Below are positions 13,800 to 21,265 of a stretch of 64,000 bases of DNA, one piece after another. The notes beneath the pieces are model-generated. The model made no database searches and was not told where the DNA came from. It saw only the letters and a list, made by a program, of their open reading frames with translations. The stretch lies in sequence record MN871441.1; one strand, 5' to 3'. How positions within the stretch are numbered: position 1 is the stretch's first letter; every line of letters starts with the position of its first letter. Made by a program: the position numbers and the translations under genes.

Positions 13800-15351
13800 T
13801 TACAGACCAGCCAGNGCACGAGCTTGGATGTCTTTCCAGATTTGGAAGTTAACAATCTTACCNTCACGGAAAGCAAGTTTCANTTCNCCTTGGTTGAACT
13901 CATCAGCGGTTTGGTTCTCGAAAAGAACATAATCACCATCNACNTTNTCAACCCGCAGACGACCCCGAGCGGANTTCTTACTGTTCAACGCAGTTTTCGG
14001 GTTCTTCTGCATGGAGATATCAATTCCATCAACGATGGAGTGAGTACCCTTGATTGCAATAGAGAAGCTATCGCGAGAAGCATTCTTGAGGAAACCCCAA
14101 CTACCAGTACCCATCAGTACGTTGGAAACACACCAGCCAGCAGCAGCCATACCAGCATAGATCTTCTCTTGCAGTTCACCGTCAATCGCTTCACCGTAGA
14201 TGATACCAACTTTCGGATTCAGAACACGAAAACCCTTCTCGTTCACAGTACCACCAAAAATATCCCACAGGATTTGCAGAGACCCTTTACGTTCGTTCTC
14301 ATCTTCTGCTTCCGGGTCACCCATGATCACCTCGTAAGGAGTCTTNCGGGTTCTTCTGCATGGAGATATCAATTCCATCAACGATGGAGTGAGTACCCTT
14401 GATTGCAATAGAGAAGCTATCGCGAGAAGCATTCNNNAGGNNACNCCNACTACCAGACNATNATACGTNGNNNACNNNCCGCCANCACTATCCGCAACGT
14501 AACTCAGGATCCCGGTCGGATAAGTTTCTGTGAACAGACGGCGGAGGCTTTCACGTTCTGCATGTTCAAAGCCCAAGACCACGGAAATAAGCGATACGCT
14601 GGCAAGTAACCGCATGTTCTGTTGCATTTACAGAACAACCAATCAGTTCATTGTCACTGTCAGCACCATAGTAGTCTTCGAGGTAATCGATAGCCCAACC
14701 AGTGTCAGTACCTGCACTAAAAAGAAGCTGACCCATACCAGAGATTGTAGCATCTTCGATGCCACGATGTCCACGAGCGGCGAAACAATGATTAGCAATC
14801 AATACCCAAAAATCGTTAGCCCCTGTAATAGGTGCCCACTTAGCGGAAGTTTTACGATACTGACTTGATACCATCGCGGCGTTACTCATAGGCCACACCA
14901 TCGCACTGAGATAAGTTTCGAGATAGTTTACCAACCAGAAATAATCAGGGTGTGTGTTATTCACAACAAACACAGGGACACCCATATTAACCCAGTTACC
15001 CTCTTCAATTGCACGCACTTCAATCGGCATATATCCAAGGTCATGAAGATCCGATAGGTTTTTGGTCATTACATCGCCGTAGTCCTTACCAATGGAGTTC
15101 TTCACCCGACGAACAAACCGTTTGATTACTTTATCTTTTGATTTGCGGAAGAAGTTTTGATCCCATTGCTCTACCAGATGTTGGAGTGCATATTGCAGAC
15201 CGAAGAATACCATCTTACCGTTGGAATCCAAAACGTTAGCATATTTGTCACTTCTGGGGGTCATATTAGAATATACATACGAAGTATTATCAATATACAT
15301 TTCGGCGTGAGCCCACTTATAAAAGTCGGAGGTCATATGTGGATATTTCAT
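13800..15351 (-). CDS. nadV: nicotinamide phosphoribosyltransferase-like protein (Nampt/NadV; candidate Namat), frame broken in this assembly
   Basis: SDFYKWAH, YSNMTPRS, ARGHRG, ATEHAV, SYVADS, IIYGEAI, RDSFSIAIK, KxSARGRL; 1-nt shift near 14570 and misplaced duplicate at 14347-14434. Confidence 0.88.
13998..14434. repeat. 88-bp direct duplication inside the Nampt-like gene
   Basis: 13998-14085 identical to 14347-14434 (offset 349). Confidence 0.85.
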
Positions 15352-15402: not shown

Positions 15403-16386
15403 ATGATTGATGAATTCAGTGGAACCAAGTTCCAAACACCAACCGGTAGTATATTAACAGTTAATCATATAGTTGGCAAGCAACAACGAAGGAAACTATA
15501 CGATGTAAGTTGTTCGGTATGCTCTGTAGATAAAGAGTTATATCCAGATGGATTTAAATTATCCAAACCAGATCTAACTAGAGGTAGAATCCCATGTGGG
15601 TGTTCTAAAAAACCTCAGTTATCTGAACAACAATATACTATCATAGTGAAACGTATATGTAAAGAGAAAAACTACAAATTTATAGGCTTTATTGGTGGAT
15701 ACAAAAATAAAAACACAAAAGTTGTTTACGAGTGTCCGTATCATGGCATTCAAGATACAACAAGTTATGACAATTTCGTTAACAAATCTAATGGGTGTAG
15801 AAAATGTGCTCATAGTGAGTTGATTGAATCCAAGAGAAACAAGGATTATATAACCAACGTATTAGGTATTTGTCAAACAGAAAATTACGAATTCATCGGA
15901 TATCAAAACGGATACAAAAATAAGAATTCTAAGTTCGACTATATATGCAAAACACACAACCAGAGTTTTAACGTCAGTTACGATTCGTTTGTTAATGCGG
16001 GATGTCGAGCTACATGTTGTAATTCTAACTATGGTGGATTCAAACGTGATAAACCAGCAATACTTTACGTTGTTAAATGGTCTAATAAGTCTAGATCTTG
16101 GATTAAGTTTGGTATAACCAACCACACAGAAACCCCAGAAATTAGGTTTGAACAACAGAAAGAAGTACACCACAACAAAACAGGTGGTGTACTAAAATAT
16201 ACACCACTATACATAACTGAACCAACTGACGGAGAAATTATTTTTCAGTTGGAAACCACAGTTAGTAATCTAAAACAAAAATATGGTAATGCTTGTACAA
16301 AATCTGATATGACCGACGGTTATACAGAAACATTACCATTAGAATCATATAGTGACATTATGGATATCATAAAAGGCGAGGACTAA
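15403..16386 (+). mobile_element. free-standing homing endonuclease (Cys-rich Zn-ribbon repeats + C-terminal GIY-YIG-like domain)
   Basis: CSVC/PCGC, CPYHG..CRKC repeats; LYVVKW..IKFGITN..RFEQQ..GYTE; only plus-strand gene. Confidence 0.75.
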
Positions 16387-16957: not shown

Positions 16958-17200
16958 TTATTTTTCCTTATTGGGTATATGAATCAAAACACCACAACCA
17001 CAGTTTGGGCATACTGGTAGCTTACGCTTTAAGGTATCATTATACTTCCAATTGGCGGTTTTTATGAAATCGGACAAACCAAGAATATATGTAGTCCCAC
17101 ATCGAAAGCAAGTATTTTCCTGTTCACGAAGATAAGGACTNNACCATTTTATGTCTTTANTCANCAAAACTACNGTCAATACANNNNACTCATNTTTCAA
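16958..17200 (-). CDS. Zn-ribbon protein
   Basis: CFRC and CPNC. Confidence 0.6.
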   Translation of the reverse strand: MKXEXXVLXVVLXXKDIKWXSPYLREQENTCFRCGTTYILGLSDFIKTANWKYNDTLKRKLPVCPNCGCGVLIHIPNKEK

Positions 17201-17445: not shown

Positions 17446-17620
17446 TTCTTTTCTCCAAAACAGAGAGTACCGATAGCCAGATTATGAACAAGNTTCTTGA
17501 NCCCTTCTTCGTTCATCCCATTCGCCTTTTCTCGCATCAACATTTCCTGAACAGATTGGTTAGCCAGAAGTTCATCGATACGGGNGTTNATGATTTGGGT
17601 CATAGTTTCGATACTCATCA
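17442..17620 (-). CDS. hypothetical protein
   Basis: MMSIETMTQ... ORF after prs; start approximate. Confidence 0.5.
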
Positions 17621-17631
17621 TGTTTAGTTCC

Positions 17632-18429
17632 TTATTTTGTCCAGTCGAAACGAGTATATACGTTGTCGATGTACTGTGCAAGGTTTTCTTTGGCGTTGTA
17701 AGAAAAAATTCCATGGGTAACAAACAGGTCNACNCGNNNCGCACCAGACTCTTTCAATACTTTACCAAGATTNAGGAAAGAACGNCCACCATCACAAATA
17801 TCGTCTACGATCAACAACCGCTTACCTTTGACGTCAGCATTGAAACGAGGTTCGCTAACTTCACCAGTGTTGATGTCACGAGTCTTCATGGCTTCAATTA
17901 CAGGTAGTCCCGCACTTTGAGCTTGAGGATAAATCTTTTTCAGAGCACCTGCATCTGGGGATACAATAGCATCATAATTACGACGGGAAATCCCTTGAGA
18001 ACCCCAACAACACTGTTTGTTAACAAATACGTTATTGATCAATGCGGTTGCTACATCGGAATGTGGATCGGTGAGACAAACCAAATCATATTTCATTGAG
18101 TTAATAAAATCACAAAAGACACGCAAAGACAGGCTTTCACCTACTGNCATAACTCGGTCTTGTCGAGCATAAGGGAGATAGGATAGGTCCAAAACGTATC
18201 GCACACCAGTCCCGAAGAATCGGTGAAGTGCATCCGTAAGGATCGCCAGTTTCATGATATCGCCATCGTGGATACTTGCATCAACACGAACAGTATCTGC
18301 CTCATAAGCCCCATATTCAATAACATCTTTTGGAAGTTTGACGTTCCATTCNCCACCAGCAAACTGTTTAAAATCTACAATTGCATGATTGATATTGAAG
18401 TCTTTATAAGTAACAAATAATTTATACAT
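17632..18429 (-). CDS. prs: ribose-phosphate pyrophosphokinase-like protein (candidate Adps)
   Basis: YLPYARQDRV, DPHSDV, VSPDAGA, KTRD, LIVDDICDG, VTHGIFS. Confidence 0.92.
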   Translation of the reverse strand: MYKLFVTYKDFNINHAIVDFKQFAGXEWNVKLPKDVIEYGAYEADTVRVDASIHDGDIMKLAILTDALHRFFGTGVRYVLDLSYLPYARQDRVMXVGESLSLRVFCDFINSMKYDLVCLTDPHSDVATALINNVFVNKQCCWGSQGISRRNYDAIVSPDAGALKKIYPQAQSAGLPVIEAMKTRDINTGEVSEPRFNADVKGKRLLIVDDICDGXRSFXNLGKVLKESGAXXXDLFVTHGIFSYNAKENLAQYIDNVYTRFDWTK

Positions 18430-18827
18430 TAGATAATCCTCATTGAAATTATGTCGGAGTTTAGGACGAGATATTCCCCTTCCCGTTTCAAGATCCTAAG
18501 TAGAATCTTTCTGTACGGTTCATAATCACAGAACTTGTGGATCATGAACCTGATGTTATCGATTGAAAGGATTGGAACTGCTTCTACTTCATATGTGTGT
18601 CCATCGTCTGTCTTCTGGAAGTATGACCCAACAGACCGAGCCGTTTTAGCACAAGAAGAAAAGCTATTCATCGTGTGATCATCGTGTGGATTCTTAGACG
18701 ACCACCTATACAAAATACACGGTTTATTATTAAATTTTTCTTTCGCATAGTCAACAAGAATTTTAACTTCGTCGTCGGATACGGGGAGTCCGTCAAGGTA
18801 ACGGAACAAAACAGAATGTGGGGTCAA
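18429..18827 (-). CDS. putative R-S-E type ADP-ribosyltransferase
   Basis: LYR41, S55-F-S57..A63, E116-G-E118-YLV; TTG start overlapping NADAR stop, TAATG overlap with prs. Confidence 0.55.
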   Translation of the reverse strand: MTPHSVLFRYLDGLPVSDDEVKILVDYAKEKFNNKPCILYRWSSKNPHDDHTMNSFSSCAKTARSVGSYFQKTDDGHTYEVEAVPILSIDNIRFMIHKFCDYEPYRKILLRILKREGEYLVLNSDIISMRII

Positions 18828-19273
18828 AGTTGTTCTCTAATCTCGTTCAAAATGTCACAAAACTCTTTTTCCGTCAGAATTGTGATGTGTGGATCCTTAC
18901 AACCCATAGTATGGGCCAATATATGCGGTTTTGAGTGTACCAGAGCCTCTAGGAATGATTTGTTCTGTTCGGCCATTGAAAGGTATGCGTTATACAAAAG
19001 ATTGCTATACGCTTCACTGAGACGGTTTACAGGCTTTCCTTTATACCACATAGTAAGGTCTTTCTGCCACCCCCTATTAGAATGACAAACCTTATAAACT
19101 TCATGACCCCTCAAATTGTTTATGTCCGGGGGGTTTTCATATTTGAGGCTTTGTAGGAAAGCCTCAATCGTCCGATAATACACACCGTCGAATGTAAATG
19201 GGTGTTCTGTGAAGTTTGACAACTCACGTTCAATCCAATCCCGGCTCCCGGAATAGATGTCAATGATTGCCAT
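18824..19273 (-). CDS. 30.3: NADAR family protein (T4 gp30.3-like)
   Basis: LSNFTEHPF..DG..Y..IEAFLQSLK and TILTEKEFCDIL match T4 30.3 as recalled. Confidence 0.85.
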   Translation of the reverse strand: MAIIDIYSGSRDWIERELSNFTEHPFTFDGVYYRTIEAFLQSLKYENPPDINNLRGHEVYKVCHSNRGWQKDLTMWYKGKPVNRLSEAYSNLLYNAYLSMAEQNKSFLEALVHSKPHILAHTMGCKDPHITILTEKEFCDILNEIREQL

Positions 19274-19697
19274 ACTTCTTTACCAGATCATCATAACCAC
19301 CACTGTATCCATAATCTGTGGTCTTGTCAATCTTAACCTCAATTTCTGCACTTTCAAAGTGTTCGAAATATCCCGTTACGAAATCCATATCAATTTTGAT
19401 CCTACCATCAGAGTGATGAATATTCATGGATGAGAAGAAATCGAAAGGATCTTCTACATCCTTGGCCCATGGACGACGAGAAGCCAGATCCTTAACCATT
19501 TCCTGTTTTGCTGGTGTCCAACGTTCGTTGTTGTATGCGTTATAGAACTCATTGAACTCGTAAATCTCAACAAGTGCCTTCATAGCATCATCGTTGTCAA
19601 ACCAAACAGGTGCCAGAATTCGTTCATCGTCGTATGTATTAAAACTATCACCAGTTCTATATTTTACCCTAATAATGAATTTCATACAACACCTCAC
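19260..19697 (-). CDS. hypothetical protein
   Basis: tiling ORF. Confidence 0.65.
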   Translation of the reverse strand: MRCCMKFIIRVKYRTGDSFNTYDDERILAPVWFDNDDAMKALVEIYEFNEFYNAYNNERWTPAKQEMVKDLASRRPWAKDVEDPFDFFSSMNIHHSDGRIKIDMDFVTGYFEHFESAEIEVKIDKTTDYGYSGGYDDLVKKYGNH

Positions 19698-20110
19698 TTG
19701 TAGAAAACGAACGATACGGATTGAAGTTTTCCGCCGGTAACAACTGTTCCGATATCGAAATTTTCTTGTTTGGTCATACTTTCAATAGAGCGACCCATCC
19801 GACAGATTTGTTCAATCATTTTCTCGCCACTATCCGGTTTCTGATGAAATGTAATGACCCATCGAGCAGGAGAAAAGTCATTAGATTCCAGATCCTTGAT
19901 ATTGATTGATACATGTTTATCAAATCCCTTAAGACAGGTTGGTTCATAATACTCGTTCATCTGAACCATACGTTGGAGGGTATTGATGAACTTGTTCATC
20001 CCATACTGGTATCGGAGACCGCTATATTTTCCAAAACCAAGTTTGTTACCAAACACGTCGATCTCGTTTTTAAAAACTTTCTTTGCGTAAGTAGTAATCT
20101 TCATTATCAT
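19694..20110 (-). CDS. hypothetical protein
   Basis: overlap-coupled ORF. Confidence 0.65.
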   Translation of the reverse strand: MIMKITTYAKKVFKNEIDVFGNKLGFGKYSGLRYQYGMNKFINTLQRMVQMNEYYEPTCLKGFDKHVSINIKDLESNDFSPARWVITFHQKPDSGEKMIEQICRMGRSIESMTKQENFDIGTVVTGGKLQSVSFVFYK

Positions 20111-21204: not shown

Positions 21205-21227
21205 TCTAGTTCTCCAAAAAATAAAAC

Positions 21228-21265
21228 GGTATAAGGATTATCTCCCTATACCGTGAACATGTCAA
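21228..21265 (-). promoter_or_regulatory. early promoter with stem-loop enclosing the -10
   Basis: TTGACA-N17-GATAAT; CGGTATA/TATACCG arms at 21228-21253. Confidence 0.65.

Follow-up and report, generated by a model that had tools for sequence, protein, structure and literature searches.

ModA and ModB of T4 are small stand-alone ADP-ribosyltransferases (ARTs) of T4-like phages, encoded in the srd-modA-modB locus and 200–207 aa in length. After an N-terminal helical segment, these proteins carry the three motifs of the R-S-E type of ART: an aromatic residue with an arginine, then S-x-S/T, then E-x-E running into a hydrophobic strand. ARTs are common in myoviruses, and it has been noted in general terms that NADAR genes lie near ARTs and near NAD+ salvage genes in T4-like phages (PMC9503650).

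Base-linked ADP-ribose is removed by enzymes of the NADAR type, T4 gp30.3 among them. T4 gp30.3, also called AdfN, is a NADAR DNA ADP-ribosylglycohydrolase (PMC11825919, PMC11125620). It strips the guanine-linked ADP-ribose placed by the R-S-E enzyme ScARP (PMC11125620) and it counters DarT1, and is reported to require an unknown phage factor (PMC11825919). In the bacterial toxin–antitoxin loci YbiA-YarT and DarT1-NADAR, the NADAR gene lies directly upstream of the gene for a very small ART; the two overlap and point the same way. YarT has 114 aa, and YarT and DarT are both of the H-Y-E type.

A further set of phage genes is concerned with the rebuilding of NAD+. In the NARP1 pathway, Adps turns ADP-ribose (ADPR) into ADPR-PP, and Namat combines ADPR-PP with nicotinamide to give NAD+ (bioRxiv 10.1101/2024.02.11.579819). 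NARP1 loci gather accessory genes for ADPR-handling enzymes, such as RyDEP and Adpp, which are hydrolases that yield ADPR. The gene described here lies between a NADAR gene and the genes of a NARP1 pathway and encodes a putative ART that is smaller than the Mod proteins.

The gene, its boundaries and its neighbours

The window, that is the whole stretch of DNA analysed (64,000 nt of sequence record MN871441.1), is a piece of the genome of a T4-like Aeromonas phage, since its region 17600–19700 is 99.5–99.6% identical by megablast to the Aeromonas phages AsSzw2, AS-zj, AS-yj and AS-sw (Straboviridae, Ceceduovirus) and ~75% identical to phages 65 and 65.2 (Ishigurovirus). The gene of interest occupies 18429–18827 on the minus strand, and its product of 132 aa (plus a stop codon) is a candidate minimal R-S-E ADP-ribosyltransferase, which belongs to phrog_18982 and is a hypothetical protein in RefSeq (YP_009834417 in phage AS-zj). 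The original prediction had placed this ORF correctly, leaving out only its strand, and had numbered its motif residues correctly as I38-L39-Y40-R41, S55-F56-S57, A63 and E116-G117-E118-Y-L-V.

The ORF is a real gene under selection. Its start codon is a TTG (18827–18825), which is the sole possible start, a longer form being precluded by an in-frame TAG three codons upstream. The TTG shares bases with the TGA that ends the upstream NADAR gene, in a TTGA junction (18824–18827, minus strand), and a purine-rich AGAGA tract lies 7–12 nt upstream, at this junction. At the other end, the TAA stop overlaps the ATG of a Prs-like gene in a TAATG junction. Both junctions are unchanged in six lineages in which the proteins encoded by the ORF are just 60–93% identical, and the pairwise dN/dS of the ORF (0.05–0.27) indicates purifying selection. 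The first 18 residues are conserved at the protein level, and the L-x-x-Y-L-x-G segment is present also in two distant relatives, which argues that the 132-aa form is the correct one.

The gene has been annotated variously, as 132 aa in AS-zj and as a 114-aa short form in phage 65.2, whilst in avDM6 it is unannotated and the original record of phage 65 (GU459069) has it in two pieces, apparently through a frameshift; the loci behind the mismatch are L002:4055-4399, L003:4001-4396 and GU459069 itself. The 114-aa annotation in 65.2 and the absent annotation in avDM6 are too conservative.

Short low-depth contigs cover 18612–18899 in a sequencing run guessed to be RNA, and neither transcription nor strand is readable from them. 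Scans for promoters and terminators gave sites no more numerous than in shuffled sequence. A terminator-like hairpin overlapping an 11/12 sigma-70-like promoter match (21226–21265, minus strand; a consensus match only) may mark the start of a transcription unit that runs through the gene.

Upstream of the candidate, in the same orientation and with a 4-nt overlap, is the NADAR gene (18824–19273, minus strand; PF08010, E = 6.7e-33), so that the adjacency typical of NADAR–ART pairs is present. Its product is a homologue of T4 gp30.3/AdfN (38% identity) and keeps the residues that align with the T4 catalytic residues E36 and K43. Downstream, the Prs-like gene whose ATG overlaps the TAA of the candidate (17632–18429, minus strand; phrog_619, PF14572 and PF13793) is the adps of NARP1. 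A NAMPT-like gene, probably that for Namat, the second NARP1 enzyme, is found 2.3 kb beyond it (13800–15351, minus strand; phrog_448, PF18127; two overlapping ORFs), giving the combination of Adps with a nearby Namat that marks a NARP1 locus.

The genes of the trio, adfN, the candidate and adps, are all joined via overlapping stop and start codons, and the trio is kept in every close relative. Since these relatives make up a single syntenic lineage of Aeromonas phages, this conservation may simply be inherited. All of the NADAR-linked copies belong to that one lineage rather than recurring in independent ones, and neither NADAR nor NARP1 genes were found beside the genes for two distant members of the family, P0006 and P0007, which are described below.

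The layout is like that of YbiA-YarT and DarT1-NADAR in that the NADAR gene lies directly upstream of a gene for a very small ART (putative in this case), co-oriented and overlapping with it. It is unlike them in that the candidate is of the R-S-E and not the H-Y-E type, and in that the pair, defined here by gene adjacency, is carried by a lytic phage and not by a bacterial toxin–antitoxin locus. The candidate can also be compared with the NARP1 accessory enzymes RyDEP and Adpp, whose genes are likewise extra genes in or beside an adps-namat locus and which likewise act in NAD+/ADPR chemistry. However, these hydrolases yield ADPR whereas an ART consumes NAD+, and no common fold is indicated. 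The position of the gene is intriguing and may reflect a functional link to NADAR or NARP1.

Some other features of the NARP1 region deserve mention. The two Namat ORFs lie at 14566–15351 and 13800–14627, with a 1-nt insertion near 14572 relative to AS-zj. A segment of ~117 nt (~14340–14456) is similar to sequence further along in this gene, and the 5' half of the gene is just 82.5% identical to AS-zj, in a region rich in N. The split Namat is possibly a pseudogene, a mosaic or an assembly artefact, which are indistinguishable given the many N. Between the NARP1 genes, on the opposite strand, is a gene for a CapR-domain, homing-endonuclease-like protein (15403–16386, plus strand). This insertion, which has the look of a mobile element, is present also in avDM6 and in the contig of the metagenomic orthologue P0002 (L027) and is absent in AS-zj, 65.2 and L028. 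The unannotated genes between adps and namat include a small zinc-ribbon-like ORF that bears two CxxC pairs (16958–17200, minus strand).

The family and its conserved residues

The search for relatives combined three word-index searches with an exhaustive HMMER search and with pattern scans of contigs from viruses, metagenomes and genomes. The full-length gene was found in 19 records of Aeromonas phages and four metagenomic orthologous clusters (P0001–P0004). The HMMER search, which covered 1.84 billion representatives, added P0005, which is a fragment, and the distant relatives P0006 and P0007, of 197 and 147 aa, respectively. These two are surrounded by small phage genes, and each matches phrog_18982 on its own (E = 1e-6 and 1e-5, respectively), which argues that they are true relatives. 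The yield is completed by an odd metagenomic protein of 177 aa, P0008, with three tandem repeats that each resemble family residues ~22–68 (H/Y-R-W ... N-S-x-S) and with no E-x-E part. L007 proved to be a false lead. The gene directly upstream of that for P0007 (L008:5365-5874) encodes a calcineurin-like phosphoesterase (PF12850, phrog_547). No description of the family was found in the literature, and within the known ART superfamily it is best regarded as new, very small and confined to phages.

The residues that prompted the assignment to the R-S-E type are strongly conserved in the family. In the first motif, the aromatic-Arg pair Y40-R41 (codons at 18705–18710, minus strand, that of R41 being 18707–18705) is invariant, unchanged in 7/7 aligned sequences, with the distant members reading LYR or VYR. 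The second motif, S55-F56-S57 (18657–18665, minus strand), is of the S-x-S form here and is followed by A63 and an invariant G67; the two serines never vary, and the residue between them is F in the Aeromonas phages and T in P0006 and P0007. The third, the E-x-E motif E116-G117-E118 (18474–18482, minus strand), leads into the hydrophobic run Y-L-V-L. Both of its glutamates are invariant, with EKE in P0006 and EQE in P0007. Thus the distant relatives show the textbook forms, STS and E-x-E.

How much weight such a pattern can bear was assessed with strict and loose regular expressions, run on shuffled versions of the candidate protein and on the 139 ORFs of at least 100 aa in the window. The strict R-S-E pattern was found in 0.075% of the shuffles and in a single window ORF, the candidate itself. 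The loose version was found in 4.3% of the shuffles and in 8 of the 139 ORFs, so the bare motif pattern is weakly informative. Conservation was examined in an alignment of seven sequences that included P0006 and P0007, at ~35% identity. Invariant columns number 23 of 132 and include Y40, R41, S55, S57, E116 and E118. The chance that five positions named beforehand (R41, S55, S57, E116 and E118) would all fall in invariant columns is ~1e-4 (hypergeometric), and the conservation of these five down to ~35% identity indicates that the motif is non-random. The seven-sequence alignment has no conserved His-Tyr pair, R, S and E being what is invariant in it; the family is not of the H-Y-E, DarT-like type.

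One property of the motifs counts against an ART. R41 and S55 are separated by only 14 residues in the candidate, far fewer than the roughly 24–54 residues between the R and S motifs in Mod and cholera-toxin-type enzymes.

Relationship to known ADP-ribosyltransferases

Sequence searches of Pfam, NCBIfam and the PDB returned nothing relevant to the candidate. The match in PHROGs, phrog_18982, is of "unknown function", and PADLOC gave one weak restriction-enzyme match only (E = 0.006). The lack of Pfam matches weighs little, since T4 ModA and ModB (L011:2909-4131) are likewise without a match in the Pfam copy used.

An hhalign comparison with nine Mod-family proteins brought the YR, SxS and ExE motifs into register, yet the match was not significant (E = P = 0.082; 0.24 with two sequences), and homology to the Mod family, which has a separate PHROG, was rejected. 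The candidate does resemble ModA and ModB in being, by prediction, a small stand-alone ART of a T4-like phage, and in the order of its parts, with an N-terminal helical segment before the aromatic-R, S-x-S/T and E-x-E motifs and the hydrophobic strand. It differs from them in its length of 132 aa versus 200–207 aa, its profile match of P = 0.08, its PHROG, its much shorter R–S spacing, and its place in a cluster of NAD+/ADPR genes instead of the srd-modA-modB locus. As originally predicted, there is no Mod locus nearby: tblastn with T4 Alt, ModA and ModB gave no match in the window. Homology to T4 gp30.2, the product of the gene 3' of 30.3 in T4, was also considered and none was found. In Klebsiella phage vB_Kpn_AM_K4, a Mod-like ORF of 124 aa (L026:380-754) ends before the E-x-E strand and appears to be a truncated ART.

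AlphaFold2 models of the candidate were poor, with a pLDDT of 49 with five sequences and 61 with seven, and core residues 40–81 below 50, the alignment being too shallow. Fold searches with these low-confidence models (Foldseek against the PDB and BFVD, Atlas shape search, AFDB clusters and VIA-align wide) gave noise only.

Language-model features from the ESM Atlas, matches to which carry no E-value, point consistently to ARTs. With the window protein as query, the named clusters in the nearest 100 are without exception ART or ART-like. They are DRAT, DUF4765 (ART-like according to PMC7883292), ADPrib_exo_Tox, Mod_ADP_RT and NarE. The features of P0007, which is 35% identical, lead to NarE, Pertussis_S1/Scabin-like and Lart1, with nine of the ten best named matches belonging to one family or clan, and those of P0004 lead to DUF4765 and Arr-ms.

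P0004 is an orthologue of 132 aa, 63% identical to the candidate, for which the ESM Atlas holds a model with a pTM of 0.80 and a pLDDT of 0.80. The structural neighbours of this model are Pertussis_S1 (TM 0.53, residues 34–132), an LXG/PT-TG polymorphic toxin (0.51), DUF3990 (0.46) and ART-PolyVal (0.44), all over the region of residues ~34–132; these are moderate TM-scores (~0.5) that compare prediction with prediction. The Atlas matches are mutually consistent and span exactly the segment that begins at the R41 strand. No match to a solved structure was found, and the ART fold is seen at the level of a predicted model, that of P0004. Two uncharacterised viral families (141 aa; 211 aa, Nucleocytoviricota) match the predicted P0004 fold over its full length with a TM of 0.66, and it may be that a wider, unnamed group of viral ART-like proteins exists.

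NarE, Pertussis_S1/YtxA and Scabin-like proteins are the nearest named neighbours by features and predicted structure. They have the R / STS / ExE architecture in common with the candidate, but sequence homology between them and the candidate is undetectable. As a phage protein without a secretion or delivery part, the candidate gives no hint of being a toxin directed at eukaryotes.

The idea of an R-S-E ART, which originated from the motifs of one protein, is thus supported on several sides: by a triad that is invariant to ~35% identity, with STS and E-x-E in the distant members; by three members (the window protein, P0007 and P0004) that map to ART families by Atlas features; and by the ART neighbours of the P0004 model and the ADP-ribose and NAD+ genes on both sides of the gene. 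On the predicted models, the candidate is likely to have an ART fold. That it is an active enzyme is probable, with somewhat less confidence; inactive ART-like folds exist, domain D4 of CNFY being an example.

Proposed activity, target and role

The reading that we prefer, and consider fairly likely, is that the candidate, as the representative of a new phage-only family, is an active minimal R-S-E (cholera-toxin-like, ARTC) mono-ADP-ribosyltransferase whose target is probably protein arginine. NAD+ would be held by R41 and the S55-x-S57 strand, and E118 would be the catalytic glutamate, steadying the oxocarbenium-like transition state while nicotinamide leaves. The ADP-ribose would then be passed to a host macromolecule. 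[quoted passage not shown]

The candidate would be translated from its weak TTG start, coupled to the upstream AdfN-like NADAR gene. Such a start and such coupling to adfN suggest a low level of expression that is tied to that of the eraser. With adfN, the candidate and adps coupled in this way, the phage would make an NAD+ consumer alongside an ADP-ribose eraser and enzymes that rebuild NAD+.

The mirroring of YbiA-YarT (NADAR upstream, small ART downstream, overlapping codons; YarT of 114 aa, PMC11125620) raises another possibility for the target, that the ART could write the base-linked ADP-ribose that the NADAR erases. In such a nucleic-acid writer–eraser pair, the ART would mark a base (e.g. 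guanine) of host DNA or RNA, the NADAR would clear the mark where it harmed the phage, and Adps and Namat would turn the ADP-ribose set free, together with nicotinamide, back into NAD+. T4 gp30.3 does clear guanine-linked ADP-ribose placed by an R-S-E enzyme, ScARP, the catalytic residues of the window NADAR are conserved, and RyDEP and Adpp provide a precedent for accessory enzymes that supply ADPR to NARP1. The trio is also kept across two phage genera. However, its synteny is inherited in one lineage and not independently recurrent, and P0006 and P0007 are without NADAR neighbours. Conversely, the T-even phages have AdfN without the candidate ART, and AdfN already has a role of its own against DarT1. 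The chemistry would be R-S-E and not the H-Y-E of YarT and DarT. In addition, the DNA-targeting enzymes of the pierisin family bear Q-x-E whereas the candidate has E-x-E, and the orthologues of Aeromonas phages, whose pI ranges over 5.2–8.7, are not uniformly basic. Overall, marking of nucleic acid seems unlikely.

It is distinctly unlikely that the motif is a coincidence and that this small phage protein has a fold and a function unrelated to those of ARTs. Such a coincidence would be in keeping with the lack of significant homology to any ART, with the loose motif in 8 of the 139 window ORFs, and with the low-confidence AlphaFold models, from which the ART fold was not recovered. But it is precisely the motif residues that are invariant in the distant relatives, and three members map independently to ART families. 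The structural neighbours of the P0004 Atlas model are ART families, and the flanking genes deal with NAD+ and ADP-ribose.

Similarly improbable is an ART-like fold that modifies no macromolecule, acting as an NAD+ glycohydrolase, as a small-molecule ADP-ribosyl transferase with NARP1, or as a non-catalytic NAD+/ADPR-binding partner (e.g. of the AdfN-like enzyme): although the tight coupling to adfN and adps, the gathering of accessory ADPR-handling genes at NARP1 loci, the reported need of T4 AdfN for an unknown phage factor, and the existence of inactive ART-like domains would suit such a protein, the complete invariant R/S/E triad speaks for catalysis on NAD+, an NADase beside NAD+-rebuilding genes would set up a futile cycle, and the candidate is not similar to T4 gp30.2, which has the equivalent position in T4.

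A broader scheme, which must be regarded as quite improbable at present, is that the genes form a closed ADP-ribosylation cassette in a lytic phage. The ART would write on host nucleic acid or on a defence protein, the NADAR would erase ADP-ribose from phage molecules, and NARP1 would make NAD+ again out of the ADP-ribose and nicotinamide that are released. If this were true, ADP-ribosylation would be a phage weapon at no net cost in NAD+.

An active mono-ADP-ribosyltransferase, as we prefer to see it, would place the candidate among the smallest R-S-E enzymes known. Its family, restricted to phages, is one that domain databases do not recognise. With no Mod homologue found in the window, the candidate provides a compact and readily testable putative enzyme for asking what the T4-like Aeromonas phages modify in their hosts. 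Its fixed place between an anti-DarT NADAR eraser and NARP1 connects it with the arms race over NAD+ in which phages and bacterial defences are engaged.
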